A stretch of DNA of 52,088 bases from Octopus bimaculoides (GCF_001194135.2 NC_068991.1:8900799-8952886); one strand, 5' to 3'; shown: positions 3,871-34,841, counted from the stretch's first letter. Program-made: numbers and translations. The notes: generated from the letters alone by a model not told the origin.

Positions 3871-5143
3871 CTGAAAAATAAAGAGGAGGATTAAATTTTC
3901 AAACAAGCAAGTTTTTGTCAAAAAACGAAATGTTAAACCTATCTCAACTGCTTAAATTTGGTCTCAATTTATCTGTAAGACCCTGTATAAGATAGCTTTA
4001 TTTCAGTTTTCATCTATCAAATCCACTCAATGCTTTGGTCAGCCTGGGGCTATAGTTGAAGGCACTTGTCTAAGGTATCTTGCAGTGGGACTGAACTCAA
4101 GACCACATGCATGATTGGAAAGCTAGCTTCTTGACCACACATTCACACTCCGTGTGTATTTTATTAATAACTGGAGTAGTGTGATCATAAAATATAATGT
4201 TTAGATGGTGGTGCTCTCAGGTTGTGAAGCCATCTAATGATGACTCTGTTCGGAAGGCTGGAATATCATTTGATAAAGGAGCACGGTACAATGAATTCAT
4301 AGAACAAAGCTGTAACTTTAAATACCTTTACTCTGGGTCTCAAATATATACAAGTTGAATGATAACGTAAAGTGTTCATAAGTGAAGGGCTATGTTCATC
4401 TTTTGCGTAACCCCATGTTCTCGCTGCTGCGGGTGTACGAAAGATAGCTGTGACCTCTCAACGTGAAGTAACGTCTCGACTTGGGAAGAAAATTTTTCTA
4501 GTGAACTCTGCATCATTTTAGTAGAGAGGAAAAACACGAACAACAAAACTTGTTTGAATCAAAACTTTTGACATCCCTTCTGTTGTTTCGACGAGTACCT
4601 CGAGGGAGGTGATGGTACCAGTGTCAGGTAAGGATCCTTTATTAACATGCATGATAAGCACGAGAAAGTTTTAACCCTTACACACCTTGCGCTCGTAGTC
4701 AATTGCTCCCCTCGTCCCAAACTTTGGTTTACCACTGGACGGTACACAACGAAATACGGCTGAAATAAAAGACATTAATAAACAACTGGCTAGCTGAGCT
4801 GAGAACTGTTAATTTGATAGGTGCCATGTGAGTCTAAACCACAAAATGGTCATAACATTTACTGGGAGGGAAACAGAGAGAGAAAGAGAGAGTATCTTTT
4901 GAGGGCGCCTGACGTAGCAGCCAAATTTTTCAAATCACATCCGACAGTCTTTAAAAAGAAAAAAAAATGCGAAGACGAATAGAATAATGCAGTATTCTGG
5001 ACGTGACCATTCTGTCTTTTTCGACAGGATGGTAACACGGCTAGAATATCTGATTAGTCCGCTCTAACATGGCTGACTGAGTCAAACAACAACTGGAAGG
5101 GAAGAAGAGAGAGAAATAAAGATTATATGCTGCATATATATAT

Positions 5144-5577
5144 NNNNNNNNNNNNNNNNNNNNNNNNNNNNNNNNNNNNNNNNNNNNNNNNNNNNNNNNN
5201 NNNNNNNNNNNNNNNNNNNNNNNNNNNNNNNNNNNNNNNNNNNNNNNNNNNNNNNNNNNNNNNNNNNNNNNNNNNNNNNNNNNNNNNNNNNNNNNNNNNN
5301 NNNNNNNNNNNNNNNNNNNNNNNNNNNNNNNNNNNNNNNNNNNNNNNNNNNNNNNNNNNNNNNNNNNNNNNNNNNNNNNNNNNNNNNNNNNNNNNNNNNN
5401 NNNNNNNNNNNNNNNNNNNNNNNNNNNNNNNNNNNNNNNNNNNNNNNNNNNNNNNNNNNNNNNNNNNNNNNNNNNNNNNNNNNNNNNNNNNNNNNNNNNN
5501 NNNNNNNNNNNNNNNNNNNNNNNNNNNNNNNNNNNNNNNNNNNNNNNNNNNNNNNNNNNNNNNNNNNNNNNNNNNNN
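5144..5577. other. Assembly gap (N run); others at 14050-14544, 30257-30524, 40363-40625 and 50375-50725
   Basis: Runs of N. Confidence 1.
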
Positions 5578-5840
5578 TTGAAAGAGAGAGACAGACAGAC
5601 AGAAAAAGGAAGAAAATAACGGTTACAAATTACATTTGCTGATTGCAGATGAAATATAATTTATCAATTGAGATTTTCAATAGCTAGATTTATAAACGGT
5701 TATAAAGGTACATGTGGGAATTGAACATTCGATAACTCGGGAACAGTTTCTAAAGATAGTGAAACATCATTTTACACTTTGCTATCTTAAAAAAAAAAGA
5801 AAAAGAAACCACGAAACTGTTTTGAATGTAGTTTGTCTAA

Positions 5841-5907: not shown

Positions 5908-8900
5908 ATGGGGAGCGGACTGTCAACAGACTCGCGATCAACGGGTAATTCCGGTTCACAATCAAACCCAGGACTTCTGCTTCTTTCAGATCTTGTGAAT
6001 AAACAATATCCGTTTGAAAATCTCGTTTTCGAAGGATGCGGGACCAAAGCATTTGCTTACGTTGGAGCCATTAAGGTAATGCTTTTTTTCCTCGTTTTTT
6101 TAAACGATATCAATAAAGACTCTCTTCAAACGGACGCATTCAGTGTTGTGATTTTACTTAAGTCGATACCAGCCTCATTTTTTTTCCTTTTATAAAATGT
6201 TCAATTGACATTTATTGCTTTGTTTAATCACCGTTTTCTTTCAATTTAAAACTAATTTGGTTACTACTGTAATTCGACAGGTCCTCGAAAAAATTGATGC
6301 TCTTTCTAAAATCAAGCGATTTGCTGGTGTCGGCACTGGTGCTGTTGTAGCTTGTCTGTTGGCTGCAGGCTTCGACTGCTGCGCTCTGCGAGACTCGCTC
6401 AAACAACACTTGGAAAATGTACTTACTGGTAAGCATGTGATTTTTATACGAACAAGGGTTAAAAAAACTCCTGAGGTTGTGTTATGAAGATTGTTTGAAT
6501 CTTATTTGTCGTTAACAAAACAATTCTCTGCGCAGGAACGGACAGTGTCAATATTGTCTTAAGGCCGTGGCACACTTGAATAGTTGATTGTGGGGTACAC
6601 GAGGCTAGAGAATGCCCACTTCTGTAACTTGCAATCAATAAGTATTATAGGCCACGGTGCATTGCCTTGCTTGAAGTTTTGAAGTCTTATAATACTACGA
6701 AAATGTCTTTGGCTGTGCTCGTGGCTTTCATAGGCTTTCCACTGTTAATGTGTAGCATAAACGTCTTTCATACACAGACGGTTATTGTCTCGCTTCCAAT
6801 ATTTTACTTTGCTACTGAAGTAGTTTTGTTAACGCGAGTTGCTCTACAGGTCCCGAATGAATACATTAAACGGCTTGCTTTAAAAGAAATTTAATATTTC
6901 TGGTCTAATGCTTCCATTTCTATTTTATAGTAGAAACCTACAACTATTTGATCTACACACCAAAAGCTATAACTATCGAAACGTGTCATTTGTATCGTTT
7001 TCAGCCAACCAGTGCAGCAATAAGGGTCAAGTGAATGAATTACTTCATAAGTTTGGTTGGAATTCCGGCAATAAATTCCTTGATTGGTTGGGGACTCTTC
7101 TGAAGGAGAAATACGAAAACGCCGATATAACGTTCCAAGAGGTAAGTATTCGGTATCGTTAACCCTGATAGACATTGACTGATATTTCTTAGTCGGCACT
7201 TTAATACCTTAAATCTGTTCTTAATTTCTTTCACTGATATTTCAGCTTTATGAGAAAACCGGCAAGGAGTTGTGCATCGTAGTTCTGAATCTAAACCGAA
7301 TGCGAGAAGAGTACTTTCACTGCAAGACCACACCTACTACCGCTATCCGTTGGGCAGTTCAAATGTCCATAAGTGTTCCTGGTAATTTTTATCGGTTGTT
7401 TCCCGTTTGCTTGTTTATCATAGCTTTTTCGTATTTAAAACTTAAACAATAGTTTTGCGTAACAATTGGGTTGGTAGTCAATATCACAGAACAAAGGCGG
7501 TTTCTGATTGTATCTTTCAGGTCTTTTTCAACCCCTTACATTCAACGCTGGAAAATCGCGCAGAAACTATTACTTAGATGGTGGAATTCTCTGCAATTAC
7601 CCCATTCATTGTTTTGATGGTAAGTTTAAAAAAAAAAAAAATTTTTTTTTTAATATCTGAGTCTTCAGTACTGTTTTAATTGGTTTTGAAACTCCTTGTA
7701 GGTTGGTGGCTTTCAATGGAACCCGGGGAAAAAGTCCCTCACAAATATCGACCAACTTCTGACTTGAAGACTTTGATTCGAGAACGCTTCTCTAGATACA
7801 ACTCGAAAACCATTGGATTCGCACTGGTAAGGTTTATAAGTAAACAATATAATTAAGCGTAATTTTACATCGATTCTGAACATTCTAAAATTATCTGGTC
7901 ACCTGCTTAACTGATTCTAATTGATATCTTGGTCATTAAAATTTTTTTTTTATAATAGTTTGACGATTACCACTACCATGATGAAGTGGACATTGAAATG
8001 AAACGGAGACTAGATCAAACTAAAGCAGTGGTTCCTATACCAGCGACCAAACTTGGCAGGTGTGAATTTTAATAGTAATTGAATGACCGAGACTTGGCAA
8101 CAAAATCTTAGATCTTGCTTTTCCTTACGAAATAATTAACCATGTGCTACACAGCTAAGGTTTCATACCCATTGCTATTTTTTTTTTTATTTGTAATACT
8201 GCTACTTTTCTAAGCCGGAGCTTAATCAGGCTACATGGTATACATCAAAAAGAATTTACTGTTTATAAGTAAAGATATTTACTCGTTTGCAGCGACGTGG
8301 TTTCAGGTGCTGTCCCACTGCGCAATATTTTGGGCAGCTATTGTCTATATCCCCGGACCGACCGATTTCTTGTGAATTTAATAGACGGAAAGTGTGGAAG
8401 CCTTTTGTTCTGCACTACTGCCTGACACCCATTAAGTTATGTCCCTTAACATAACGGTTCGTGAAAAGAAACCGATATAAGTACCACACTTAAATGGGTA
8501 AAACATACCCACATACGATATGTTTCGCATTTTGCTTCTATACTTTCTAATTTGGTTCAGGACATCATTAAATCTTAACGGTTTAGGTTCAGAAGCTTAA
8601 GGTTTCTGCTGCTAAATGCCTCCCTTATTTTCTTGTGTAGACACAATAACTAGGTTACTTTCTAGGCTGATTTCTGTTCTTACTGCATCTTTACAAATGT
8701 TAACAATATTTTTCTCACTTTTTTTTTTTTCCAGAAAATACAAAGTTGATATAGAAAATGAGAATAAATTGAAAGAATTGTTTAAGACCTTTCCAGAAGC
8801 TACCAAAAAGCTTGAAACTGTTTGTACCAAAATAGCTACTTAACTATTGCTTTTAAGATATTTCCATCGCCGATTTGATCTCTTTAGCATATGGTTGCTT

Positions 8901-10085
8901 TAGCATAGTAACGCTTTATTTATACTTTCAGGTTTTGGAGACAATTAAAAAAGGTGATGATAATCTAGTGTCGGTTGTTCGATTAGTAAAGGAATTTACT
9001 GGGAAGGTAAATGTCAAAAAATTTTTGTTTTGCCATCACCAGTTGCTTACAACAAATAACGTTGCCACAATTTCATTTAACTATTTTAACCCACCTTAAT
9101 TTCTGCAGAAATCTAATTTCACTCAGTCTGACATCGAAGCATTGTTTGGGATTGAAAAGAACAAAGACCAGTGTTCGAAACTACTGAAGAATGCCAGTAC
9201 CAAGGAGATGGTGAGTAGTGTTGTTCTTAGCTGTTTCATTGGGGGTATTTGAAGGCTAAAAGGTCTTGTTCTTCTTACAGATCTCAACTATTGACATGCT
9301 GCATCTTCTTGATAAGACGAGCCGCTTTCTCTACAATCCCAACAAGCGTACATCAAGAACTGAAGTTAAGAGTATATTTTCATTCTGGGGTGCAATCAAT
9401 GGTGTTGCGCATGCAAACAGTAAATTATTGGTAAGCATCTCTCCTATATTTTCTTTGTCATTAGACTGCAGCTATGCTGGGGCACCGCTTTTATGTATCG
9501 AGTCGAACTAGTCAATCCAGGTCTTAAGGCTCCTACTCATCTAACGGTCTCTTGTCGAAATCGCCAGATGGTACGGCCTTGAATAAACTGACACCGCTTA
9601 TCAAACGGTGGACATGCAGCTGACGGACTACCAGTTTCCTTCTACCGAAACTGCTCATAAAGCTTTAGTTGACCCTGCGTTATAGTCAATACCACATAGC
9701 AGGATTGAACCTGAAGTACCAGTAATATCAAAGAATTTCTTAATCACACAAACATTCCTGTATCTATTACCGCTTTTATTGTTTTTTTTTCTTTCGTAAA
9801 TAACCAAATGAGATTAAAATCTTTGGTTTATTTTTTTTTTAAACCTCCAGAAAGAGAACTTGATGCGTACCATTGGTATTTACACTGGTCATGTTACTAG
9901 TGACGATGTTCAACTTGAAGAAGATGACGAAACTTACCTTTTTCAGGTGAGGTCTTGACATTTTTAGTTTTATTTCCCACCCTATATTATTTCCTTAAAT
10001 TCTTTCTGTAATTGCAAATTTCTTTCATTTGCAGCAAGGATGGAACAGTACAGTAACTTTCTTGCGTCAACTACAGAAGCAATAG
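5908..10085 (+). CDS. Patatin-like phospholipase-domain protein, paralog 1 (490 aa, 13 exons); catalytic Ser replaced by Gly
   Basis: GT-AG exons with consistent phases: 5908-6075, 6281-6428, 7005-7141, 7246-7381, 7521-7619, 7702-7826, 7959-8059, 8735-8819, 8932-9006, 9109-9210, 9281-9430, 9851-9946, 10035-10085 (1473 nt, no internal stop). Motifs: MGSGLS; NLVFEGCGTKAFAYVGA; KRFAGVGTGA; YLDGGILCNYPIHCFDGWWLSM; RTIGIYTGHV. AATAAA at 10252-10257. Confidence 0.88.
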
Positions 10086-11503
10086 TACCGCGTTAACTAC
10101 AAAATTGGCAACGACTATACCTTATCGATCGGCTGCTCCCGGAACACGAAATCGTCAATTCTACTGTGTTGGAATGTTAATTTTTGCTCGCTTCTTGGCT
10201 GTTATTGCTTTCGCAAAATTGTTTTTGCTCGTTAGTTTACCTTTTTATTGAAATAAAACTTCTTAATCGCTATTATTCGTCAATTCAATTCTTTAAATAC
10301 CCACAATTTGAAAATTCTCAAGTTTAGAATTAGTGAATTTATTTCTAAGGTTTGACTCCTTTTCGTTCATTTGAGCAAATCTTGACTGAATTCGAAGCAC
10401 AGGTCTCTGAATGGCTTGTATGTATTGGTAATCAAACGTTATACCATATTTGTAATTTGATACAATCCCTCGACTATTGCTGGTGTTACGTTCCAAAAAC
10501 CTACCGCGATAGGTGAAAATTCAGGAAGTAGAAACTTGCTGTTTATTTTAATTTGTATTTTATAAATGCAAAACTTTACGGAGGAATCAACGTAAAATTA
10601 AATAATGAACTGCGATATTCCGGTATATCGAGATCCCATCTTACGACTAGATGTGGAATTTTAGTTGAAAGAAAATAAGTCATGTTAGCCAACTGGCATT
10701 TATTCACTTGCTAGCACATTACATTTAAATACCTCACTAGTTGACTTTTCTATTATAGGTTAGACACCAATTTAACCATTGAATACGGATCTTTTTGGCT
10801 AATTTACTCATAACAATGCTAAAATTTTAAAGCTTTCAATTGAACTGCTTTGGCCTGATGAAAAACAAATCCAATATTATTCGCTCGATGTGCATATGGC
10901 AGAAGTTGGCATTTAGCTTCTGAATTAGCTGCAAGATAGACTAAAATACACTTTTTAGCTTTACAAAGGCGTAGTCTGATGAAAACCAGATCTAAGTAAC
11001 CTTCATTGTTGCTACTTTTTAGCTTTTAAAACCTTTGTTCGCTTATTTTGATACAAGTTTTAACAAAACCAGTCGTAGTTGACTGATCTTTAAGTAAAGC
11101 AAAGTGAGTATTACAAATGACGAAAGTTAGTTTGGCTTTATCTGGAAGAGATCCATTTCCACGCTCTAGATAGGCCGGTCATGTACTTGCATACAGATTT
11201 AGGAAGTAGAGGAAAATTTTCCCCGTCTTTCTGCATTTAGCTGAGAAATATTTCGAAGAAATAGTATTTCACGTTTTGTGATCGTGTATATTAGTGTTTC
11301 GAATTTTCGGTGAGAGATGCATAGATTTTGGTAAATAATTTTCCGATAATGAAAACTTTGCATATTTTAAATCTCTACGCAGGATTACGTCTGGTAAAAC
11401 CTTTTCGATTAGTATTACAGCTTAATCTGCGATGAAATTGCTCTGAGTTTAAAACTCCTAACACTGAAAGGAATCTGCATTTAAACGTTTTAATTTATTA
11501 GTG

Positions 11504-11670
11504 AAGGTGGCGAGCTGGCAGAATCGTTAGCACGCCGGGCGAAATGCTTGGCGACTTTTCGCCCATCCGTAAGTTCAAATTCTGCCGAGGTCGATTTTGC
11601 CTTCCAGCTTCTTCGGGGTCGATAAAATGAGTACCAGTTGAACACTTGGATCGATGTAATCGACTTACCA
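11504..11670 (+). mobile_element. tRNA-derived SINE, family A (GGCGAGCTGGCAGAATCGTTAGCACGCCGGGCGAAATGCTT head)
   Basis: A/B-box-like head and ...GGGGTCGATAAAATGAGTACCAG tail. Related copies at about 12640-12790, 22835-22925, 25110-25290, 28240-28390 and 28525-28650. Confidence 0.75.
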
Positions 11671-13489
11671 CTTTGTCTGAAATTGACTTTGTGACATTTT
11701 GGAAACTCTTTTTGCCCGGAATGTCAAAATTTCATTGATTCTTACGCAATCTTTATGGGATGTCCACAAAAGCTTAAAATAATTTATTGCGGTCTGAAAC
11801 GTATAAAACTATAAAGAAATTTGATATTAATATGCAAATTTAGTTGCCACCTATTTTAACTTTTGAAAATGTCTCGGCTTTGGCCATCCTGTAATTTGAA
11901 CCAGCAAATGATTTGCTCGTCTGAATCTCCAGCTCTGCTGAAAACAACATATAACTGACTACATTAGTATATAAAAAAGGGGCAGCTTTAAATTTTTAAC
12001 AGGAAAACGTATGTTAAACTTTGATCGGAGATTCATAATTTTCTTAGTTATAATACATATTACTTACATATAAGAATTCATTTCGTCCATCAGTGTAAAA
12101 TAAAAGCCACAAATGTCTGTACGAATAGATAACCTTTGATTTGTTACTTAATATTCTCATTCACACTTTAAAAATATAGCAAACGCTTTTCAATGGGTAC
12201 ATCGAGCAAATATCCATTTAGCTTACTTCCAAACCACGTGGCACCTTCGGCAAGTGTCGTCTACTATAGTCTCGTACCGACCAAAGCCTTGTGAATGGAT
12301 GTAAAAGGCGCCGGCTGTTTTTCACTTAATCTCCATTCAGTATACCACAGTTAAAAATATTTAAAGCCGATGCTATAAGGCGTAAATTCCTTCTCTAGCT
12401 TAACCTGGCTTGTTAGACTAAGGCTTTCTAAATAAAATAATTCTTTAAAAAAATCCTTGCAAAATGGAAACTACTAGACCTCCACCCTCGTCCACTGAGA
12501 CGAGCCGACGGAGGAGCCTGTATGTATTCGTTCGGCCAACTAGAATTAGCAGACAATTTATCCTTAAATTATTCTCCATTGTCCTCAAAAAAAAAAAGGG
12601 AACATCTACATTGTATAATATAGTCCGGAAAGAAAGCGGTGAACTTGGCACAATCATTAACAGTTGCATTACTTCCGGTATTACGTTCTGAGTTCAAATA
12701 CCGCCGAGGCCGTCTTTGCCCATTTATCCTTTCGGGATCGATAAAGTAAGTACCAGTTAAACACTGGAGTCAATGCAGTCGGCTAACTACTTCTAAAAAT
12801 GCTGGTCTTGTACTAAAATTTGAAACCATAATGTAGTCGTAAATGACTGAAAAATTAAACGCGATGATTTTTGTTCACCTTAGAGTATAATGTGGCAGCT
12901 ATAGTACAGTCATTCTATATAATAGAAATGGCAGCCAAGCCTACCTCAAATGTACTGATCAATAAATAAATGAAAATGATCAATTCAAATGGCACAAAAT
13001 AAAACGACGAGTAAACAGCATTAATAACAAGTTCTATCAAAACAGTTAACTTCGAAATCCAAGTGAATTAAAAATTCAATTGTGGCATGTAGTATGGTCT
13101 TTGGTAAGTACAGTAACAACTCGGGGCATGTTCCGATCTCATTACACGTCTTCAACTCAGCATAGATTTTACTAGTTGTTGCCAAATGTATGAACGACTG
13201 AGGGAATAAATAGATTTTTAGTGAGAAATATTGGTTTATTAGACACTTTAACAACAATTATATTAAATATATGAATATACATACTTCATGCAGAAATCAT
13301 CCATGGGGAAATTCCGTCTGTCGTTCTAAAAGGCTGTGAATGCAACGTAAGAATAAAGCTTGAAGGCAAGTGTGACATATTCACTGAGGTGAAGCACAGA
13401 GTTAATCGTAGACATTGTTTGTAATCTTTGTGCTTAAAATATGAATAGACACTTGACAGCAACAACGACGGTAGTGATAGCTAGCTGGT

Positions 13490-13850
13490 ATACTCTTTTA
13501 CTTGTTTCAGTCATTTGACTGCGGCCATGCTGGAGCACCGCCTTTAGTTGAGCAAATCGACCCCAAGACTTATTCTTTGGATGCCTAGTACTTATACTAT
13601 CGGTCTCTTTTGTCGAACCGCTAAATTACGGGACGTAAACACACCAGCATCGGTTGTCAAGCGAAGTTGGGGGGATAAACACAGACACACAAATATATAC
13701 ACACACATACACAGTTTCAGTTTCCGTCTACCAAATCCACTCACAAGGCTTTGGTCGGCCCGAGGCTATAGTAGAAGACACTTGCCCAAGGTGCCACGCA
13801 GTGGGACTGAACCCAGAACCATGTGGTTGGTTTCAAGAAATCATTGGAGT
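13490..13850 (-). mobile_element. SINE family B, near-complete copy
   Basis: High similarity to the 41894-42237 and 47314-47655 copies. Confidence 0.8.
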
Positions 13851-15797
13851 TGTATTGTTTAATTAACTGAGTCAAATTTCAGTCGTCAATGAAAACCATC
13901 ATCACAACCAAACTTAAATTCTTTCTAACAATATTAAAGAACAAGGAAGTAGTGATGTTGCCAATATATGGGGTCAACGAAGAGGGAAACCGCCCCCGCC
14001 CCCGCGGACGTCGACGTAGCCTGGATAGTAGTCGCAGTCTTGCTCGGTANNNNNNNNNNNNNNNNNNNNNNNNNNNNNNNNNNNNNNNNNNNNNNNNNNN
14101 NNNNNNNNNNNNNNNNNNNNNNNNNNNNNNNNNNNNNNNNNNNNNNNNNNNNNNNNNNNNNNNNNNNNNNNNNNNNNNNNNNNNNNNNNNNNNNNNNNNN
14201 NNNNNNNNNNNNNNNNNNNNNNNNNNNNNNNNNNNNNNNNNNNNNNNNNNNNNNNNNNNNNNNNNNNNNNNNNNNNNNNNNNNNNNNNNNNNNNNNNNNN
14301 NNNNNNNNNNNNNNNNNNNNNNNNNNNNNNNNNNNNNNNNNNNNNNNNNNNNNNNNNNNNNNNNNNNNNNNNNNNNNNNNNNNNNNNNNNNNNNNNNNNN
14401 NNNNNNNNNNNNNNNNNNNNNNNNNNNNNNNNNNNNNNNNNNNNNNNNNNNNNNNNNNNNNNNNNNNNNNNNNNNNNNNNNNNNNNNNNNNNNNNNNNNN
14501 NNNNNNNNNNNNNNNNNNNNNNNNNNNNNNNNNNNNNNNNNNNNATACCACCATCAGCAAAAACAGAAGAAGAAGTAAGCGGAACAGAAGGCGAATGGGT
14601 GACAACAGGGAAGAAAAGGAAGAGAAAAAGGAGGAAACCAGGTAAAATAAATACTGAGACCCACCCCACCTAACTCCCACCCACACCCTCTTCTTCCCAC
14701 CCGCTCCCTACAGACACTGAACCTACTCCCCTCCAACACGAAAACAAACACAGTCAGACACAAGTAATTCAACCTCCCTCCCCCCCCGGAAAAAAAGAAG
14801 AAAGGAAACTATGTAATGATGTATGATAACACAAAATTGTGTGTGAAGAAATTAAAAAGCTGAAGGACGTTAGAGCGGTGGACACTCACAAGTTCGACAA
14901 CGTGCAAGGGTGACATTGCTGCCTGTTGTTGGACGAGAACCAAAGGGAAAAAATTTTTAGATTCAAGAAAAGATTTACAGTATGGCAAGTCGATCTGGAC
15001 ACTCAAAATTCGCCAGGAAATATGAACTACATGCTTCTACTGAAGAAATACGGAGTGTATATTTTTGAAGGCTCCGGGTTCAAAAAGAGAAAGTGAACAG
15101 AGGTAAAAATGAAGTAACCCAGAGATGGGGCCGAGGAAATTTCATTCCATTTCTCATCTTCATCTTATCATTCATTATAACATACGCTTTTCTTTTCTTT
15201 TATTTGTTATGTGTCCCCACATGTGATTGTGTTATCCCCTCTGTGTTAGCCCCTTGTGGGCAATAAAGAAAAAGAGTGTCAATTCCAACTAGTCTGTGAT
15301 TGGACGGGTGCGACTCGATACCTTATAGAGACATGTCAAATGATATGAATAAAATTAAATCAGTTATGGGCAGCATACGGCCCATGGGATTTTCTGGATG
15401 GCCGCCTAACAAAAAAATTACTTTCCAAAAATGTTTAGCTATGCGGTCCACCTGGTGATGAGTTATGTCTAATGCGATCCGCTTCTCGATAAAGGTTGCC
15501 CGTGCTTGACTTAAATAGCCAGTGGATGGAAAGATGCGGTGAAAGCATCGTAGGATAAAATACATGGGATAAAATACATGTCATGTGATCAGAAAATAGA
15601 TGGAAAATAGAAAAGAAAGCAGATGAAAAAATTATCCACACAAATTTTGCTTGTTTTACGTATAACTTTAATGGAACGGGTGGGAACTGAACTTGAAAAT
15701 TTCAGTAATATAATTGCAATTCGCAGAGGTACTTTTCACTTCACCTGGTTGCGTAAAATAAAAACGGGCGGAACAATTTCAAATGGAATCTACTGAA

Positions 15798-15865: not shown

Positions 15866-18800
15866 ATGGGAAACCAAAGTTCACGTAATCTCGGATCTGA
15901 ATCAAGCCCAGGACTTCTGCCTGTAACATCCCTCAAGAAACAGCAGTACCCATTTGAAAATCTAATCTTTGAAGGATGTGGTGCCAAAGCATTTGCTTAT
16001 GCTGGAGCAATAAAAGTAAGTTTTTTTTCCTCCGCTTTTTTCTTCAATAGTTCTCATTCTGAAATACGTAAACAATGTTTTCTTTTAAATTACTCTGATA
16101 AATATATAGCTACTTAAATATACAGTTGAAAACTATCGTATCTTATTTTTCAAAGATTGACTGTAGTTTTATTGCTTTTTTTTTTTTTTTTTTAAACTTG
16201 AAAGTTCTTACATTAATCGCAATCGGAAGCCTTGTTCCCATAAACTCTTCTCTTTTAAACTTCTGAAAATCTTGCAGGTCCTCGAGAAAACTGGCATTCT
16301 TTCTAATATCAAACGATTCAGTGGTGCTGGAACTGGTGCTATTGTAGCCTGTCTTTTGGCCGCTGGTTTCAGTTGCAATTCTCTGCAACAGACCGTCAGT
16401 GAACACCTGGAAAAGTTCTTGTCTGGTAAGAATACAATTTTTGATATTCCTTAATACTGCCACTCTCCCTCGATAATTTTGCAGAGAACAACTTCTGGCT
16501 TACCTGTTCGAATCGGAGTCTCCACTGCAATTGATAAATAGTATTGTTGCACGTAATTAGTGTTTATAACTGATTCTAGCATTGTTAAAATTCGAATTTT
16601 AGGATTCGATATTCTATAGCTTTCGTATAACTCTTGGTACTTGTTGTTGGATCTCCTACATTTATTTGCATTCGTAAGTCACGGCAATAAACTAAATCCA
16701 TGTGTGTCAACTAATCTTAATCTAGAACAATTCTTTTACCCTTTTCAGACAACCAGTGCACTGATGAGATTCCCCAAGATGAGATGTTCGAGAAGTTCGG
16801 TTGGAATTCTGGCCAAAAATTCTTTGACTGGTTCGGTGATATTCTAACTCAAAAGTGTGGAAACGCTGACATAACATTTCAAGAAGTGAGTACACAATGC
16901 ATATATTTATTACAGGTGATATGTATTGGGAGAACAATTCTAACCTTATTTCCTGTTCATACTATTTCAGCTTTACAATAGGACTGGCAAGGAATTGTGT
17001 ATCGTTGCTGTGAACTTAAACCGAATGAAAGAGGAGTATTTTCACCCCAAAACAACACCTGATGTCGTTGTTCGTCGTGCAGTCCTTATGACCATCTCTG
17101 TTCCTGGTAATTATGCAATCTACAATTCAATTTTTCCTTCTCTTTAACCTAATGCTTTGCTGTATTATTCCAATGTTTTAAAAATCGATGTTTTTATGTT
17201 AGACATTTGACTAGCTCCATGTAGCTTTTAGCCTATAATACCTCATTTGTAAATTTGCCCACTTGTTAATTAAAATTTTTTTTAGCCCTCTTGCTCTCAC
17301 TATTTTGCTTCATCCTTTTATCTTTGAATACGATACTATATTTTGAAAACGCATCAAAACTTGGCTCTGACTTTAAAAATGTCAGTTCTTTTCTGTTCTT
17401 CCCATGACCGCTGCAAACCAGTTTTTGAATACTTTTCACTCTTTATTCTTAATAGGAATGTCCCAGCCTGTGAAATTTAGTGTGGCCGATTCCCCCGAAA
17501 GCTACTACCTTGATGGTGGGATGCTTTGCAACTACCCCATTCACTGCTTCGATGGTTGGTGGCTATCAATGCAATCCGACAACTCATTTCTTCAGAAATG
17601 TCAAACTCCTGATATTAGAACGCTGAATAAAGAACGTTTCTCTGGCGTTAACTCCCAAAGCCTCGGATTTATCATGGTAAGTTTTAGTTTCCTCAAACTT
17701 TCATATTCGTTTCAGTACTGCAGTCCACAGCGTTCCGTTTTGTGTCCTGTCTTATATAGATGTCCCAGTTAATCACTATCTAGTTTAGTGAATAACTAAT
17801 ACCAGTAAACTAGAATAATTTACAAAAATGGTATAATATAAGTTACTGTGTAATGTTTCTGTAAGAATTTTCAAGAACTCCGAAATTAACACTAAAGCCT
17901 AAAGTTCAAAAGATTTCTAATTTTGACTTCATTTGGTTTCTCAGCGCATTAAATTTGTGTTCTCGTTTAAATCCAGTTCGACGATTATCACTTCGCTAAG
18001 ATTTATGATGCAATGAAGGAGCGCCTGGATCTTACGGAAGCTGCTATCGCCATACCCGAAAGTAACCTTGGCAAGTAAGTATTTTCGAGTACATATGATG
18101 TATGACAATGTGAGTGGGCATAGACCATAACTTCAGATAATATGGTCTTTATTTAAATACGAAGTTAATATTTTCATAGCTGATGGTATTTAGTTTCAAC
18201 AAAATTATATTTCTTTTAAAGGAAATACAAAGACGTTGGTCAAAACATTGAGCAGATGAGACTGATATTTGAGAAGTTTCCAGAAGCCATGACAAAACTT
18301 CGTGAAGTAAGTTACAAATTTTCAAATTTAAATCTGTCTATTGAGCTTAATCCTGATTATGTAAATGGCTTAAAATATAACTGAATTCCTGTCTATAAAC
18401 AGGTTTTGGAGAAAATCAAAGACAGCAACAATTTGGTATCGGTTTCCGAATTGACAAAGGAGATAACCAAAGTAAGCTTTTAGCCTAATTTCCTCTAAAT
18501 CGTATCTGTCGTTCACTTTGATACCCGAATACTTGAAAATGGTTTTGGTCACTTATCTGTTTCTAGGAACATTTCTCTGCGATAGAAATTCAGGCGTTAT
18601 TTGGAGTTGAAAATAATGAAAATGAGTGCCTTGCTTTTTTCCAAAAGCATTTTGATGCAAAGGAGATGGTGAGTTAGATTGCCCTTAGATATATTCAAAC
18701 TTGTAATGGATTTTATTGTAAACTTTTCACTTATTTCTTTCAGCTTCCAGTTACTGAAGTTATAAGCTTTATTGAGAAAAGAACCTCTCGCAAGTTTTAC

Positions 18801-19322
18801 AGCTATAGTAAGATTTCAACAAGGTCGAATGTGACCAATTTATCGTCATTCTGGGGGACAGTAATTAATTCCATCCACGAAATCAACAAATTGGCTTCGG
18901 TAAGTGTCGTTATATATAGTTAAGACAATGTCGGCAATATATAAGATGTTTGAACTTATTCCTCGTGTCTATCTTCCAGGAAGACGACTTGACCCGTACT
19001 GTTGGTATTTACACCGGTCATATTAGTAATAATGATATTGATCTGGATGAAGCCGACGAAATATATTTATTTCAAGTGAGTCCTCGATTTCTTTTTCTCG
19101 CGTCTCCAAATTCTCCGTCTCCTATAATTGTGACTTTCTAATTTGTAGCATGGTTGGAACTGTACAGTGGCCTTCTTGCGACAATTCGGTGCCCTATCAA
19201 TTACAACACCAGAAGAAATGGTATCTATCAGTACCCAGGCACCACCACATGAACCAAACCAAGAGCTCGAAACAACAACGGAACCGACAACTGAATCTAA
19301 ACCCACGGACCTTGAAGATTGA
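15866..19322 (+). CDS. Patatin-like phospholipase-domain protein, paralog 2 (523 aa, 12 exons); catalytic Ser replaced by Gly; T/E/P-rich tail
   Basis: Exons 15866-16015, 16278-16425, 16749-16885, 16971-17106, 17456-17676, 17977-18074, 18222-18306, 18403-18471, 18567-18668, 18744-18899, 18980-19075, 19149-19322 (1572 nt, open). Motifs: MGNQSS; NLIFEGCGAKAFAYAGA; KRFSGAGTGA; YLDGGMLCNYPIHCFDGWWLSM; RTVGIYTGHI. AATAAA at 19393-19398. Confidence 0.88.
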
Positions 19323-19836
19323 CTTTAATGTTTATATGCACCTGGAATCTTTGTTATCGCTTTATTTTTTTGGCCTCGTTTTGACTTCTAGAAATAAAAT
19401 AAATTGTCTTTGAACTATATTTTTGTCTTTACTATTTCTTTTAGCACTACATCGCTTAGTGCGTAAAAACTGAAAGCTCTTGAAGACGAGCAGCTCCTCG
19501 TGTTCAAAGTTACCATTGTGGGCGCAGGTTTTGATGTCAAAACATAAACAGCCGGTTATACATGCCACAAAGCATCTGGTTCAACTCTGACAGTTTCGCT
19601 AATGTTAGGTGAGCTTTTAATCGAACTCGGAAAAGCTGAAAGGTGGTTGATCTCGGGACAATTTACAGTCAGCCGAGACAATTACAAGGCCAATTGCCTA
19701 ACGTTGAAATCTTTCAACTGGAAGTGTCCGTCAAATGACTTTAGAACTTTTGTCGCAAGTCGCTATACATTACAACCCCATAACCCTGGTTCATTCTGAA
19801 AACGATGGTCACTAAGAAATTGATGGGTTTTTATTT

Positions 19837-20019
19837 AAAAAAAAAAAAAAAATCGATCTTGGTGAGGCATTGAAATTAAGATTTAGGAAATGCAAACTGT
19901 AGAAAAATTATCTACTTATTTCGAGAAGTATACTGTATTTTCTTTAGTTTGTATTTCCTAGAACTTAATCTTACTTTCAATGCCTTACCAAGATCGAATT
20001 TTTTTTTTTTTTTTTTTTT
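19837..20019. repeat. Hairpin/inverted repeat capped by poly(A) and poly(T) tracts
   Basis: Arms at about 19851-19906 and 19938-20000 (ATCGATCTTGGTGAGGCATTGAAA / TTTCAATGCCTTACCAAGATCGAAT), loop about 31 nt. Confidence 0.75.
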
Positions 20020-21854
20020 CCACTGTTCGGTCTTTATTCGAAAATTTAGCATTTTCTTTTTATCCATCCAAGATTTAAATTTGTTTCATAATCAATATCG
20101 TTAAATTTCGAACAGAACTTTTCTGATGCAACTCGCGATAGCAATAATTTGGTATGTTGGAAGCATCTGATCTTTCGTCTACCAGTCTAGTTAACTTCAC
20201 TTTGGCAAAATATAAAGTCTATTTATTTATTTATTTATATGTTTCAGCCAATTGGCTGCGGTCATGCTGGTGCACCGTTTGACATTTCCATCAAACTCGA
20301 AGGACATTGCCTGTGCAAGTTTTCATATGACTGACAAATATTGAACTCGTTTCAATTGTTACTTCACGACTTTACTCCATTACAACTTATATATATATGC
20401 CAATAGTGTTATAAGTTTTGTTCTATAATCCAGTGTTTTTTGTACTTGGTACAGCCAGGAAATCGCGTGCATTTTGTCTCCTCTCTGGAAATTTAACCAA
20501 ATTAAATTTCACAGCTTTATATTTAAGTCTATAATCTGTTTCTTAGGAATTTTTCGGTTAATATCTTAACTTTTAAAATTTGCTTCAGTAAAATTAGAAT
20601 TTGTCACTTTTATAAGCAGTAACTTCGCATCAACTCTCACGCATTTGAATCTTATTCATGACGCTTGCACCTTGCCTATTTTCTGATTTCTGTAGCCAAT
20701 CGCCTTGTTCCCAATATACTTCCCCCCCCACCCATGTAATTTACTTCCATTTACAGACCATAAACTTGATGCTAGTTAATACGAACGCTATTCAAACCTG
20801 CAGCCACCCCCACCTTAGGTAGTGGCAGTATGACAATATAGAAACCACATGATAGCGCAGATGCAGTTTGGGGACTCAACTACCAAAGACTAACACAAGC
20901 GATATTACGAAACTACTAATCATTCTACAATACATTGAGTAAAATCTTCGATAACATTAGTTCGACTTGTTGCATAAACTTTTTCTCCAATAGCAAAGTG
21001 CTCAAACATCTTGAATCTGTTTTAGCTAGTAAATAGCAATTGCGATAAATTCGCAGTATCCCGATTTTCGGTACAGTCATCCAAAACTTGTAAACTGTAA
21101 AATCTGTCGTCTTTTTGGCTAGGCGTAGCGGTGGCAGCAATGAAATGCTAGTTCTCTCGAATATAGATTTAACTTAATGGAGCTATCGAAATGCTATTGC
21201 TTAACCAGTTCATCTTTGTATCCTTCGCCAATTGTTTCAATCTATAGATTACTGCGTTAGTTCCTAACACGCCTGTTTTCAACTGAGAAATGACTCAGAA
21301 GCCACGACTTGATATTTTAGTCTGTCGATTTCTTAAAAGTGGACCATCGTAGGCAAAAGGACCTGGTTGTGGGGGAACCAAAATGAAACTATTGCCACGC
21401 ATCAAGCAGCACACCATTAAGTCTCTTATTCGCATGCGAACGGTTTTAAAGTGTGTGCAGGTATGAGAAACTTACCTACAGCAGCTTCTTTCATTCCACC
21501 GACTTTCTATTTGACATTTCCCAGTTCTGAATAATTCACTGCAACCGAAGATGAATAAACATTGACTACGTTCATTGCATGATTTTTACAGACGCGACAA
21601 ATTCTATTTGATCAATTTTATCGATACGTCTCTGAACGTCAGTTTGGTGACTGGTCATTCAGCAACTTGGGCGATCTTACGATACCAGTCACACGACTGT
21701 CACTTAAGAAGCACGTGTTTATTCACATTCGTGAAGATGATCGTCGGTTTCCGTAAAAGCTTACTTTTTTCACATGCGGAAAAGGGGATCTTTTGAAGTC
21801 GTAGTGCGATTGTATGAGGGATGTTCTTTCGAAGTTGGTGTGAAGCAGAAGAAT

Positions 21855-22135: not shown

Positions 22136-23680
22136 CTGATGGTTCTTAAGTCCAACTTTTCTCTTGAAATTATTCGGAAGAGTAGCGGTATAAAAGAAAT
22201 GGTAAACATCTCCCCCAACTTAATTATTTTTTTTTTGTTTACGTAGCGTGTTATTCTATTTTGCACAAATGAATTCTAAAAACTTTTCCGTTCCAAATTC
22301 AACGTTGGTTTCTTCTACGATACCGCAAAGTAAAAATTCTGTTTAACTAGGGATCTAACACCACACAATCTTGAACTGAAATGTCTACATATCCTCGAGA
22401 CGAGTAAAGCACTGTAAAATTTAAGCTGAAAATCCATCTAAGAAAGCCTTCTTGGTTAGTAGATTTAACCTGCTCCCAAGTTTGACATAATAGGTTCTAG
22501 GATACCTTTTTAGGCCAGATGAACAAAACACGATTAGTGCCAACGACTTGCTGAAATTGATTTTAAATTTATGCACATGCCCAGTAAGCTCGAGGGGAGG
22601 GGATTAGTCTATTACATTGATCCCAGTGTTCAACTGGTAAGCCAACATCGACGGGATTTAAACAACTAAGACAGACGAAATGCATAACACTTCGCCCGGC
22701 TTGCACGATCCTGGCAGATCGCCGCCTGTACCAGCTGAAATATTAAAATAGTTATTGCATGATCATTTCCGATATATTTCAGTGAGCGGCACGTCACTTC
22801 GACGCCAGATAATTGTAAATAAAATAAGCAGTATGGTGGTGGCGAAACGCTTAGCAGTATTTCGTTTGTCTTTATGTTCCGAGTTTAAATTCAGCCGTGG
22901 TCGACTTCGCCGTTCATACTTTCGTAGTCGATAAAAAGGTCAATCTAAGAGTATATGTAGATATATCTCCATTGAAAACCTGCTACAAGCAGATTGGAAT
23001 TGAGCAGTTCATTTGAAACTGCTTGTGTTGATAATGAAGGAGATAATTCCTGATCACACATTCTGACCAAAGTCGTGGTCGTCTGAGGTAGAGGAAAAAC
23101 GTTAACACGATTGGTTGCGATTCGAATGAGAAGTGGTTACCGTAATCTATCAGGTCAAGGATCACCCGTTGAATCGATGGCGTTTTATGCAGGTTAATAT
23201 AGAAAAGGGGACTCAAAAAATAACTATTTTAGGTAAAGTAAAGAGTGTACGTCGAATATTCAGAAATGTGACGAAGTTGGTTTTGAAGTTAAAACTGTCT
23301 GCAAAGTAGGACAGTCATTTTTCTACTGATTACATCACTGATCTTAAATGTAGTACAGTAGCAGTTTTAAAGCTCGATCTTAAATTTTTTAATATTTGAT
23401 ACACGGTATTTATGCACAATGTTAATAATTCGTAGTCATTTTAACAGATTCTGTTGAAACGATTGTATATTAATTTGTGAACAAAAAAAAAATATAACCA
23501 CATACATTCGTTGTAAAACTTTATTTCGATAAAGACAATTCATTAAAGCCATAAACTACTATTTCCTTGAAATAAACCAAAAACTGCAAATTCGAGACGA
23601 GTACAAATTGAACAAAGATTTTTCGGGTATTCGTAGCCATTATTGAAGCAAAATTCGTTTAAAGGGATTCGTCAACGGAT

Positions 23681-26600
23681 TCAGGAAGTGTCTGAACTGC
23701 TAGATAACAAGTTTTTCTGTCCTGACGTAGTAGGGGTGGATGTCTGGGTAATCTCTCGCAAGAACGCCACAGTGCAGTTCCAGCCATGCTAAAAAAAAAA
23801 AAAAAAAAAAAGATTGAAATTACACAAGATATTCCTGGTGAGAATAACAGTCTGAGAATGGAATATACAAACTCACCTGATACAGGTAGATTGCGTCGGC
23901 TTCCTGCAGGCCAGTATCATTATTGGTAACATGGCCAGTGTAGATACCAATAGTACGGAACAAGTCGGTTTTCTGTAGGTTAGATATCAAACGTAAAACT
24001 AAATGTTATAAACTGTCTTCAAGTTTTGAAATTATATGTAAAACGTTATCGTACTATACAATTGTTACTGACGTAGCCGGGCACTACTCACATTACAGTA
24101 CCGGCTTGGGGCAACCCAAGTTAAGACTTAAGGTGGCCTCCCTTTAAATTATATCAAACCTGGCAAATTAATAATGTGGATTCTAATTATTTTGAAACCA
24201 GTTACCTGAAGATAAGTTCTTAGCCACTAGCGGAGCTAGAATGTGTCGCCCGGGGCGGCCTATCCATTTGCCTTTAACAATTTTGAATTACTTGGAAAAA
24301 TTAAAAAAAAAAAAAAAAGCTGCACCTACCGACACTGATTTGTTCTTTTCGTTCGATACACTATTAACCGCTCCCCAAAATGAAGACAAATTAGTCACTG
24401 CAAACGTTGGTGTTATCTTGCTGTAAGCGTAGAAATTCTGCCAGTGTCTTTTCTCGGCAATAGACAGAATAGTGCCAATTGACAGCTAAGAGATAATATA
24501 GAAAGATATATTAGCGCTCGGATTCCTCAAATATTCACGTTGTTTCAAACTAATCATCCGTTATCTCAGTTTCTAGATTTCGGTAATGCGATTTTCTTTT
24601 TCTCAAAGAAAACCTTGTACGATATGTGTTCGGCTGGATCTGGCAGTTTGTAAAAGTTTAAAAGGCTACGTTAAACTATCTTGCAGACAATTTAGCGGCA
24701 AAATAAATTCAAGCTTGATAACCTACCCGATCTTCACTGTTGGCATATCCTCGAAGCAATTCCAAACATTCTCTTTCGTCATTATCCACACCAAATAATA
24801 CCTGGAGCTCAGCCGAAGAGAAAACAGTCTAAGAAAAAGAAATGAAAGCTACGTAAATGTATTTGAAAAAATCCTTATGATTACAGACTGATCGTCTACG
24901 TATCTAAACAAACGGTATGGATTACATACGAAAATAATTTACTCACGCTATCGGTAAGTTCTTTTGCCAATCTAACAATAGATACTAAGTTGTCATCTTC
25001 CTGAAGCGTCTCCAAAATCTGAAAAGTTACACCATAACCAGTATTAAATACTAATAAGGTAAAAGCTATCGAGTCTAAAATACTTGTTTCAAATTTTGGC
25101 ACATGGCCAATAGCTTAGCGGGAGGGACTAAGTCGATTACATCAACCCCAGTGCTCAACTGGTACTTATTTAATTGAACACGAAAGGATGAAAAAGGAAA
25201 GTTGAACCCCAGTGGAATTTGAACTCAGAACGTAATGGCGGGCAAAATGCCAAGTATTTTGCTCAGCGTGCTAACTATTCTTCCAGCCCGCTGCCTTTTA
25301 TCAAAATTTAAGGATACCGACAGAGAAAAGAGTCAAATTCTTATTAAATTCACACCCTACTCCATTAAAGAGAAGCATGCATATCCAAGATACATTAAAA
25401 TGAAATGAATAATTATTTAAGCCTTTTATCATCGGCTAATTCATCAGGGTTGCACTGGGATAGGCAAAAACTTTAGCTCGAATTGAAAACCTAATTAAAA
25501 AGCGGGCGGTAGACACTCACAGTTCCTAGTTTTTCACTGGCTTCTGGAAAGCCCTCCAATTGTAGTCGCATCAGTTTCAGCCTTTCCTTGGCCTCTTTAC
25601 ATTTCCTTAGAATTTAAAAAAAAAAATCAGAAAAGTGCATTACACTAAATATTGCCACCAATGACCTTAAGATCAATCTAATACTGGTTTAGAACGTTAT
25701 TGAAAGACAGCGAGAAGAAAAATACTTACTTGCCAAGTTCGGTTGCTGGTGTAGAGATAACGCCATCGACTTGTTCAAGTCGCCGTTTCATTACATCGTA
25801 TGTATCATTGTTGTGGTAATCGTCAAACTGGAAAAAAGTTGCATCAAACAGTAAATTGACCGATGCTATTGAAACTTAAGTGTGGCTGCCTGGAGACTAT
25901 AGATACTTATGAAAAAGTATCAATCAAACATTTAAGGAGCAAATAGGATTTTAAAAAAACTTACAGTAGTAGATTTAATGAACGAAATACATTAAAATTA
26001 TCAAATATTTATGAAGAAAAAAAATCCCTTTACCGTCATAATGCCAAGGCTTGTGTGGTTAAATCCAAAGAAACATTCAATCTCCAAAGATCTCAAGTCA
26101 ATAGACGGTTGACATTTGTGAAGAAAGCGGTCATCAGGCTCCATCGATAGCCACCATCCTATAGAAGAATTTGAAAGGTCAGGAGAACTGCAACACCTAT
26201 TTTTAAAATTTTTTTATTATTATAAAGAAAACGTCGCTGCACATACCATCAAAGCAGTGAATTGGATAATTGCAGATAATCCCACCATCCATGTAGTAAT
26301 CTTCAGGGGATTCATCCAGACTTAATTTGAGGGGACGGTATATACCTATATAAAAAGAGGTCAAGTACGAATAATTTAGCCAATTGGTCTTAACTAAATA
26401 TTAGTCAGGTTACCATATTTCGTGAAATGAAAATTTTCTGTTAAACTTATGAACATAAAAAAAATCAACTAAGTTTCACTGAAGGAGTACGGGGGGAAAG
26501 CACATTTATAGTTAAATCAACGAGAAATTAAGTTGGAAGCTATGCAGAACTAGCTTAAATTGTAGAGAAAACAGAAGTAATCGCAAGTCAAAATAGTAAT

Positions 26601-27045
26601 TCAGACGTAAAAAAAAAAATTAAAAAAAAAAATTCAAAAATTTTAATTTTAAACCGGCGTTAGTGCGTTTACGACCCATAACTTAGCGATTCAATAAGAG
26701 AGACGAATAGAATCAGCACCGGGATAAATTCATTATACTAAAAATTGAAGACGGTGCCCTAGCACTACCACTGTCTGATGATCGAAACAAAGTAAAAGAA
26801 AAAAAAAATTACCCGGTATAGACATGGCTAAGGAAATTGCCCGTCGGACGACAAAGTCGGGAGTAGTTTTCGGGTGGAAATATTCCATCTTGTTCAGATT
26901 TAAATTCATGACCGGAATACACAGCTCGTTACCGGTTTCGTCGTATAACTGAAATAACGAAAATAAAATTAATCAGAATTAAAGGGTTCCATTTCAAACG
27001 GAAAAAAGATGTTCACAGCAGATACACCGCGGTAAGAGAGAGTAG

Positions 27046-27076
<31 letters not shown>

Positions 27077-28005
27077 TTCGTTTGATTAAAAACCATGAAC
27101 TCACCTGTTGAAAGGTAACGTCAGCGTCTTGAAACTTCTGTATCAAAATACGCCCTAACCAATCGAGAAACCTATAGCCGTCATTCCACCCAAAGTTATG
27201 AAGCACCTCTTCTTGGCGAACCTTGGGGGTATATTGAATATCTGAAATGGAAATCAGAAGGCTGGAAATTCGGTACAAAATATTCAGTCCTGGGTACATA
27301 GTTTATTCATAGCAATCAGAAAATTGATTTGTAGACTTCAGAGCCCGTTAGTTAGTCAGTCATCAAGAATGTCTAAATTTCGGACATCCCGAACAGTAAA
27401 ATTTCTAATCAACGGTTAAGGAGATTAACGGAATGTAATTCGTACACTGAAAAGGAAAGAAAAGAAAAAAAAAAAAGCTTACCGAACGAAAAACTTTGCA
27501 GGTGCATATCTAGTAGACACTGTACAGAATCTGGGGCAAAACCAGCAGCCAAGAGGCAAGCTACGATAGCACCACTACCCATTCCTGCGAATCGCTTAAT
27601 ATTAGAGAGAGCACCGACTTTTTCGAGGACCTGTTGGATTATGAAAGGAGGAAACTCAAGACGATACACGAAGAGATGGAACTACAAAATCTAATTTTTA
27701 TATTGGAAAATAACTTTAAAAATTAATTACAATAAAGGCTGAAAAGGCAATTAGACAGGTTCGAGACCAGCGAATTCGATAAACTTAGTAACAATTTTTT
27801 TTAGCAGAGAAATATCAAAGATGTTGGGGGAAAATACCTTCAAAGCTCCAGCATAAGCATAGCCTTTAACACCGCATCCCTCAAAGATAAGGTTTTGGAA
27901 CGAATAACGTTTACCCATTAGATCAGTTAGAGGCAGAAGCCCTGGGCTAGCTTCAGAGCCAATGTCACGTGGGCGTCTTGTGTTACACGACAGTGATCCT
28001 CCCAT
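23681..28005 (-). CDS. Patatin-like phospholipase-domain protein, paralog 3 (509 aa, 13 exons), convergent with paralog 2; catalytic Ser position is Gly
   Basis: Minus-strand exons 28005-27838, 27630-27483, 27241-27105, 26948-26813, 26345-26247, 26158-26034, 25827-25730, 25605-25521, 25018-24947, 24828-24727, 24485-24330, 23972-23877, 23788-23681 (1530 nt, open). Motifs: MGGSLSC; NLIFEGCGVKGYAYAGA; KRFAGMGSGA; YMDGGIICNYPIHCFDGWWLSM; RTIGIYTGHV. AATAAA (minus strand) at 23525-23520. Confidence 0.88.
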
Positions 28006-34520: not shown

Positions 34521-34841
34521 ATTGTTGGGTCATAAGTCCAGAATATAAGACACAGTAGGTTAACAGGAATAGGGGATGAGGTAAAATATGGTGAATCAAT
34601 GAATGGGGGCAGTTGTAGGAGGGATGGTCGCTATGGAGATTAGGTCATTGGATCTAGATTAAAATTTGTCAAGTAAAACATGGATACTTTGTGGCAGATA
34701 TAGCATGTACATACACAGCAGGCATATCAGACATGCACATACTCATATCTATGTGTGTGTGTATATATATATATACACACATATTTTATATCATACATAC
34801 ATATATATATATATATATACGTACATACATTTATATTTTAT

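Follow-up and report, generated by a model that had tools for sequence, protein, structure and literature searches.

What becomes of a phospholipase when its catalytic serine is exchanged for glycine and the gene is kept? This question is raised by a stretch of 52,088 nucleotides of Octopus bimaculoides DNA (NC_068991.1:8900799-8952886), which we call the window. A translated self-comparison of the window reveals three co-linear paralogs of patatin-like proteins. Paralog 1 (LOC106880002) is located on the plus strand at 5908-10085 and contains 13 exons that code for 490 amino acids. Paralog 2 (LOC106880001; 12 exons, 523 amino acids) follows on the same strand at 15866-19322, while paralog 3 (13 exons, 509 amino acids) is found on the minus strand at 23681-28005. 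In existing annotation the cluster genes are listed as uncharacterised PNPLA-domain proteins. An initial annotation of the window had proposed that the active site is remodelled in all three copies, giving either a dead pocket that traps a ligand or a shifted nucleophile with new chemistry. Here we report that the remodelling is present in all three genes and shared with a whole cephalopod clade. We believe that the three genes probably encode catalytically inactive patatin-fold pseudo-phospholipases, which belong to a conserved and probably membrane-anchored lineage.

Active sites of the three paralogs

In the family to which the paralogs belong, the nucleophile elbow reads G-x-S-A-G-A and the Gly-rich oxyanion (or anion) loop reads E-G-G-G-x-K. 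All three window genes instead possess the sequences G-x-G-[T/S]-G-A and E-G-C-G-x-K. The elbow of paralog 1 is FAGVGTGA (6320-6343, plus strand, with GVGTGA at 6326-6343), in which Gly74 replaces the catalytic Ser. Paralog 2 features FSGAGTGA (16317-16340, plus strand, with GAGTGA at 16323-16340) and paralog 3 features FAGMGSGA (27568-27591, minus strand, with GMGSGA at 27568-27585). The corresponding loops are E-G-C-G-T-K in paralog 1 (6031-6048, plus strand), E-G-C-G-A-K in paralog 2 (15971-15988, plus strand) and E-G-C-G-V-K in paralog 3 (27865-27882, minus strand). Compared with the strict oxyanion motif G-G-G-x-[KR]-G, the loop of the window genes is G-C-G-x-K-[AG]. The D-G-G motif is present in all three genes, at 7577-7594 (plus strand, with the dyad residue Asp216 kept) in paralog 1, at 17512-17529 (plus strand) in paralog 2 and at 26272-26289 (minus strand) in paralog 3. 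All three elbow peptides, the GCG loop and the intact DGG, as initially described, were hence found in the window genes.

The new Gly is encoded by GGC, GGA and GGT in the three paralogs, and the spliced gene sequences confirm that these codons are indeed all different. The synonymous divergence (dS) between the paralogs is saturated (1.4-1.9), showing that the Gly was kept through synonymous change as had been claimed. Its retention is thus a matter of constraint and not of recency. The presence of the motif in three paralogs is inherited and does not stem from independent events.

Relatives with and without the serine

For a broader view we gathered relatives with a word-indexed search and with a profile that was run against 1.84 billion representatives; the latter furnished 811 matches below 1e-30. 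They form a large invertebrate family that extends over molluscs, cnidarians, echinoderms, hemichordates and amphioxus. The motif columns were tabulated for 252 proteins, of which 217 have Ser and 22 have Gly at the elbow. The Ser class is uniform, with the GGG loop in 207 and the Asp in 211 of its members; the proteins encoded elsewhere in the O. bimaculoides genome by the paralogs P0060 and P0062 have such a fully canonical site. The 22 Gly-class proteins show twelve different forms of the loop (GCG in six, GGG and GGS in three each, GGP in two, and one each of GCD, GNN, DCG, SGS, SGR, GGC, DGG and GGD). Their Asp column contains D nine times, N five times and G four times, together with one S, H, E and Q each, so that the Asp is lost in 13 of the 22.

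The residue that follows the nucleophile position (+1) separates the two classes as well. In the Ser class it is Ala in 162, Val in 26, Ile in 13 and Thr in a single protein, while the Gly class contains Thr (15), Ser (4), Tyr (1), Ala (1) and Glu (1) at this position, followed by Gly at +2 in 21 cases. Taken together, Thr or Ser is found at +1 in 19 of 22 Gly-class but in only 6 of 217 Ser-class proteins. The initial statement that the +1 residue is usually small and non-polar is consequently correct inside this family, where Ala, Val or Ile occupy the position in 201 of the 217 Ser-class proteins. It does not hold for the superfamily as a whole: classical patatin and PNPLA9 both possess a Gly-Thr-Ser-Thr-Gly elbow (PMC10291501), which means that a hydroxyl group at +1 is not unusual there.

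We next turn to the phylogeny, a neighbour-joining tree with 100 bootstraps that was built from animal sequences, without plant proteins. The Ser-less cephalopod proteins are monophyletic (bootstrap 100) and come from octopods and from cuttlefish-type decapods. This clade has two branches, one of octopod proteins (100) and one (100) for which the cuttlefish Acanthosepion pharaonis is the named member. The leech Helobdella robusta belongs to a separate group without the Ser (100), and a third such group contains the limpets Patella caerulea and Lottia gigantea (100). Because the cephalopod, leech-like and limpet groups are separate, the Ser must have been lost at least three times. In the leech-like and limpet groups the loop and the Asp have decayed likewise, and the elbow G-x-G-T-G-A arose independently in the leech-like group. 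Judged from the tree, the cephalopod loss is older than the split between octopods and decapods.

Within the cephalopod clade the residues M1, G2, K68, R69, F70, G72 and G74 are invariant, while C44 and D216 are not. The loop drifts between GCG, GCD, GNN, GGG, DCG and SGS and the dyad position between D, N, S and G; 7 of 17 clade proteins have exchanged the Asp for N, S or G. The Argonauta ortholog of paralog 3 (P0007), for example, combines GCD and GMGSG with NGG. Even more altered is the site of a fourth Ser-less O. bimaculoides paralog (LOC106878189), which is located on a different chromosome, outside the window, and of its O. vulgaris counterpart P0008. Here the loop is E-G-N-N-V-K-S and the elbow G-V-G-T-S-G, with the DGG retained. 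This type of paralog shows at least 90% identity between Octopus species. Six Octopus and Argonauta sequences share Cys44, as do all three window paralogs. The loop Lys is present in all octopod members, and several decapod members have lost both the Gly-rich loop and this Lys. No block of the clade is better conserved than the G-x-G-[T/S]-G elbow. A motif that varies freely among orthologs had been named as an observation that would speak against the initial proposal; the elbow itself shows no such variation, with G74 invariant throughout the clade.

A second conserved feature is the N-terminus. Paralog 1 starts with MGSGLS (5908-5925, plus strand), which fits the consensus N-myristoylation start M-G-x-x-x-S, and M1 and G2 were found in 12 of 12 clade sequences. 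The MG start of the clade proteins may hence represent a myristoylation signal.

How could the new elbow have formed? The canonical gene P0060 encodes its AGASAGA elbow with GCT GGT GCA AGT GCT GGG GCA. Single transitions suffice to convert the Ser into Gly (AGT to GGT) and the following Ala into Thr (GCT to ACT); paralogs 1 and 2 use ACT for this Thr. Such a single-step mutation, along with the steric limits at the elbow, is a simple reason for the recurrence of Gly in independent lineages. The canonical gene and the window genes have 10 of the 11 P0060 introns in common, in alignment column and in phase, showing that the window genes are DNA-level duplicates. The intron at alignment column 196 is absent from the canonical gene. 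The phase-1 intron at column 229, which separates HCFDG from WWLSM in paralog 1, paralog 3 and the canonical gene, has been lost from paralog 2, whose exon 5 (17456-17676) now covers this position. The cluster itself has some age. One Argonauta scaffold holds orthologs of paralogs 1 and 3, and in O. sinensis paralogs 2 and 3 are adjacent, which places the tandem arrangement before the split of Octopus and Argonauta.

In the ENA assembly ERZ21867824 we also noticed three Ser-less relatives of the decapod group, which are intronless single open reading frames (ORFs) at 10001-11476 of L001, 10001-11470 of L002 and 10001-11458 of L003. Each is found on a large contig of its own (76.6, 86.4 and 821 kb), and the gene calls show no further sizeable ORFs nearby. 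On L002 a reverse-transcriptase ORF (17916-20321) follows 6.4 kb downstream of the Ser-less ORF. These sequences resemble retrogenes in the genome of a decapod-type cephalopod. The gene callers used for this assembly recover only intronless genes, so that the sample is biased.

Selection, fold and EF-hand

To see how strongly the genes are constrained, we determined the ratio of nonsynonymous to synonymous divergence (omega) of paralogs 1 and 2 against their orthologs with the Nei-Gojobori method. Paralog 1 compared with O. vulgaris gave an omega of 0.50 (0.40 for the patatin half and 0.56 for the C-terminal half; dS 0.15), while paralog 2 compared with O. sinensis gave 0.26 (0.17 and 0.33, respectively; dS 0.21). 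Both values are significantly below 1, with Fisher p values of 5e-4 for paralog 1 and 1e-12 for paralog 2. By this measure the two are maintained genes under purifying selection, with a somewhat relaxed constraint.

The fold is also retained. Paralog 1 matches the Pfam family Patatin (PF01734) over residues 39-226 with an E value of 2e-21 and 77.4 bits at a cut-off of 27.7, and the Ser-less proteins P0005 (paralog 2), P0008 and P0043 pass the cut-off as well. An AlphaFold2 model of paralog 1, computed from a 67-sequence alignment, reached a predicted local distance difference test (pLDDT) score of 87.4 and a predicted template modelling score of 0.86. It contains a strand at residues 69-72, Gly74 in the turn and a helix at 75-84, of which Thr75 is the first residue. 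The model of canonical P0060 (pLDDT 90.2) has the same architecture, with a strand at 59-63, Ser64 and a helix at 65-74. The strand-turn-helix geometry of the elbow is thus predicted to be preserved in the Ser-less protein. For the N-terminal half, Foldseek searches of the PDB found only patatin-fold proteins, namely CapE, CapV, PlpD, patatin-17, iPLA2-beta and cPLA2, with VipD and ExoU also listed. The E values were 7e-10 to 8e-5 over residues ~37-235, and the sequence matches were weak. For the C-terminal half of the octopus proteins the same comparison with the PDB gave no convincing structural match.

Canonical members carry a Pfam EF-hand on the C-terminal side of the patatin domain (residues 450-480 in P0062 and 441-509 in P0016). 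No EF-hand was found by Pfam in the Ser-less proteins, neither at E<=1 in P0005, P0008 and P0043 nor at E<=0.01 in P0001 (paralog 1). The corresponding position of paralog 1 (9172-9316, plus strand) reads CSKLLKNASTKEM and ISTIDMLHLLDK, with an intron between the two parts. While the canonical EF-hand loops follow LDxDxxGxIxxxEL, the D-x-[DN]-x-[DN]-G...E ligands are substituted in every member of the cephalopod clade in our alignment. A helix-loop-helix is still modelled at this position of the Ser-less protein. Nucleophile and presumed Ca2+ regulator were given up together.

What the proteins may do

These data are best explained, in our view, by pseudo-phospholipases that probably no longer catalyse. 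The genes would descend by ordinary duplication from invertebrate patatin-like phospholipases that bear an EF-hand and are presumably regulated by Ca2+. In the ancestor of the coleoid cephalopods, the nucleophile would have changed from Ser (AGT) to Gly (GGT). After this loss the GGG loop, the dyad Asp and the Ca2+ ligands of the EF-hand may have come under relaxed constraint and drifted, while purifying selection would have continued on the fold, the putative N-terminal MG myristoylation signal and the C-terminal helical domain. The elbow Gly may have been retained by the tight strand-turn-helix bend, which, once the Ser is gone, would admit only a very small residue. The helix starts with the +1 Thr or Ser, whose role is most likely to cap or stabilise an elbow that is devoid of a side chain. 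The proteins would then probably reside at membranes without hydrolysing lipids, where they could bind lipids or the membrane, or else regulate the active paralogs or compete with them. Of the two options that were initially put forward, the remodelled, dead active site is the one that fits: the Ser is gone clade-wide, and oxyanion loop and dyad Asp are drifting.

Three observations weigh against this explanation. First, the Asp and the loop Lys are still present in the window genes, as is a G-x-G loop. Their pocket is hence less decayed than that of the decapods, and could still bind a ligand or support some chemistry. Second, the strong preference for Thr or Ser at +1 is not accounted for by simple decay. 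Third, the plant pPLAIII proteins, which have GxGxG in place of GxSxG and G, T or S instead of the dyad Asp in most members, are reported to be active acyl hydrolases (PMC7031755, PMC4623698).

One may hence argue that the octopus proteins are still acyl hydrolases or acyltransferases, which use a non-canonical mechanism of the kind claimed for pPLAIII. The Asp could activate a water molecule, for example, or the substrate itself could assist the reaction in the pocket that is retained (G-C-G-x-K plus D-G-G). The plant precedent supports this idea, as does the presence of Asp216, the loop Lys and the G-x-G loop in the window paralogs and in most Octopus orthologs. The patatin half is moreover the most constrained part of the protein. 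Nevertheless, we regard residual activity as unlikely, though worth keeping in mind. The Asp is replaced in the 7 of 17 clade proteins mentioned above, which include the direct ortholog of paralog 3 in Argonauta, and the loop is unrecognisable in several clade members. The loss of the EF-hand ligands also points to an abandoned regulated enzymatic role.

The elbow could alternatively have been selected as a nest for anions or phosphate, similar to the strand-loop-helix of a Rossmann-like GxGxxA motif, and bind a phospholipid head group or another phosphorylated ligand. Such a role would agree with an elbow that stays invariant while its catalytic partners drift, with the independent appearance of the same G-x-G-T-G-A in the leech-like group and with the Lys that all octopod members keep in the loop. 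The facing Gly-rich loop and its Lys are however missing in several decapods, and the structural need for Gly in combination with a single-step mutation is a simpler account of the recurrence. We therefore hold an anion nest to be quite improbable. About as doubtful, in our opinion, is the more general idea that G-x-G-[T/S]-G-A is a convergently selected functional motif of cephalopods and leech-like annelids, echoed in pPLAIII, that forms a Ser-independent centre for catalysis or for a phospho-ligand. If it were true, the three tandem genes of octopus would stand for a lipid-handling activity that is new and confined to coleoid cephalopods.

Very unlikely is a shifted nucleophile, in which the +1 Thr or Ser or the loop residue Cys44 attacks the substrate with the help of Asp216. 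The +1 hydroxyl group of 19 of the 22 Gly-class proteins and the conservation of Cys44 in the octopod sequences named above are in line with such new chemistry. Yet neither Cys44 nor Asp216 is conserved across the clade. In the model the +1 residue starts the helix and does not occupy the apex of the turn, and in patatin and PNPLA9 a +1 Thr is found right beside the genuine Ser nucleophile. Active ATGL also has a non-Gly residue, presumably a Cys, at the equivalent position of the loop. The proposed shifted nucleophile is for these reasons not borne out. Variation among orthologs, which the initial annotation had itself regarded as speaking against its proposal, is in part what we observe, because the loop Cys and the Asp differ between orthologs and paralogs (GCD and NGG in the Argonauta protein). 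A shifted register, in which G-T-G-A would be read as x-nucleophile-x-small, was considered and discarded: the alignment is gap-free across KRFAG...GA, and the residue at -2 would be Val, Ala or Met.

The idea that the genes are decaying pseudogenes and the motif mere debris, to which the missing Ser and the omega of 0.50 for paralog 1 (above that of many enzymes) might point, is effectively refuted by ORFs that are intact over 12-13 exons in all three paralogs, by omega values significantly below 1, by intact orthologs in O. vulgaris, O. sinensis and Argonauta and intact relatives in decapods, and by a clade older than the octopod-decapod split.

Gene models and surroundings

The spliced model of paralog 1 is 100% identical to the O. 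bimaculoides protein of LOC106880002 (P0001). Its exons 1-7 are located at 5908-6075, 6281-6428, 7005-7141, 7246-7381, 7521-7619, 7702-7826 and 7959-8059, and exons 8-13 at 8735-8819, 8932-9006, 9109-9210, 9281-9430, 9851-9946 and 10035-10085, all on the plus strand. Paralog 2 was obtained by exact threading of its protein P0005 onto the DNA, and paralog 3 could be assembled intact from the window DNA. All introns of the three genes are GT-AG. We had considered paralog 3 as an unannotated gene, which is ruled out by the identity of its spliced protein with UniRef100_A0A0L8G0A1. A search of the window for a fourth paralog found none in the 30-52 kb region, leaving three copies.

Upstream of paralog 3 and on the same strand, ORFs at 44822-47219 (minus strand) that contain a thioredoxin-like domain and NHL repeats indicate a putative NHLRC2 gene. 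The RefSeq protein XP_014785280.2, named 'NHL repeat-containing protein 2', comprises 1131 amino acids, compared with 721-723 in other NHLRC2 models, and clusters with the 509-amino-acid protein of paralog 3. This gene model is probably a fusion or a read-through. A fusion of NHLRC2 with paralog 3 would account for the O. vulgaris patatin proteins that are named 'NHL repeat-containing 2-like'. Our analysis corrects this propagated misannotation.

The window has a GC content of 36% and contains five runs of N, which are assembly gaps (5144-5577, 14050-14544, 30257-30524, 40363-40625 and 50375-50725). Long apparent ORFs at 5127-5642, 13.9-14.7 kb and 50.3-50.8 kb each span such gaps and were rejected as artefacts. 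An ORF of 243 amino acids at 34755-35486 (plus strand) shows a weak match to the helix-turn-helix of the Mos1 (mariner) transposase, with an E value of 2.5e-4 below the Pfam cut-off, and is likely a transposon remnant. Finally, the intergenic region that follows paralog 1 (11500-13700) has short translated similarities to 22590-22640, 25120-25300, 26640-26790 and 29980-30100. These partner stretches belong to introns and flanks of paralog 3, and the similarities are probably caused by dispersed repeat elements.

Comparison with known systems

In summary, the cluster represents neither a new fold nor a new system or mechanism. Its closest kin is the uncharacterised invertebrate family that combines an EF-hand with a patatin domain (Octopus LOC106879483/LOC115216501, with members in oyster, coral, sea urchin and amphioxus). 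Paralog 1 shows ~35-39% identity to this family over >90% of its length (E 1e-93, 97% coverage). Intron positions, predicted architecture and the blocks HPKTTP, CNYPIHCFDGWWLSM and GIxTGH...QGWN are common to both. The difference lies in the site, since the canonical proteins have GGG, Ser, Asp and intact Ca2+ ligands while the window genes have GCG, Gly, Asp and a dead EF-hand. Vertebrate PNPLA1-5 proteins such as ATGL share the patatin domain. The oxyanion loop of active ATGL consists of Gly14, a non-Gly residue 15, Gly16 and Phe17 (PMC3198459), so that Gly-x-Gly instead of Gly-Gly-Gly is compatible with activity. ATGL keeps its Ser47-Asp166 dyad, however, and neither a close sequence relationship nor a common C-terminal domain exists. 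The two features that had been called new, the non-Gly residue in the oxyanion loop and the Thr at +1, are thus individually ordinary in active enzymes. The solved patatin-fold enzymes, which comprise potato patatin-17, bacterial PlpD, iPLA2-beta and CapV and CapE, effectors of the cyclic oligonucleotide-based antiphage signalling system (CBASS), match the octopus fold over residues ~37-235; the bacterial effectors VipD and ExoU can be named here, too. All of these are active Ser-Asp enzymes, whereas the octopus proteins are without the Ser.

A literature search for EF-hand patatin pseudoenzymes gave nothing relevant, and the cephalopod clade that lacks both Ser and EF-hand, together with its annelid and plant convergence, appears to be undescribed in the searchable literature. 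Our data show that an uncharacterised animal family has produced long-lived Ser-less lineages at least three times. One of them dates back at least to the octopod-decapod split and has expanded to a tandem cluster in octopus.

The closest known parallel is plant pPLAIII, which shares the patatin fold, the Ser-to-Gly exchange in the esterase box, a variable dyad Asp and retention under selection. The plant proteins belong to a different patatin subfamily and to another kingdom. In our search and in the tree the octopus genes are closest to animal proteins that contain the Ser, so that an independent origin is expected. The plant proteins also keep the DGGGxxG anion box, while the cephalopod loop drifts, and the cephalopod proteins begin with MG and have a large helical domain on the C-terminal side, in which the EF-hand is dead. 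For the plant proteins, activity has been reported. With this convergence, the exchange of Ser for Gly next to a drifting Asp, animals offer a counterpart in which to ask whether GxGxG patatins act as true enzymes or as pseudoenzymes.

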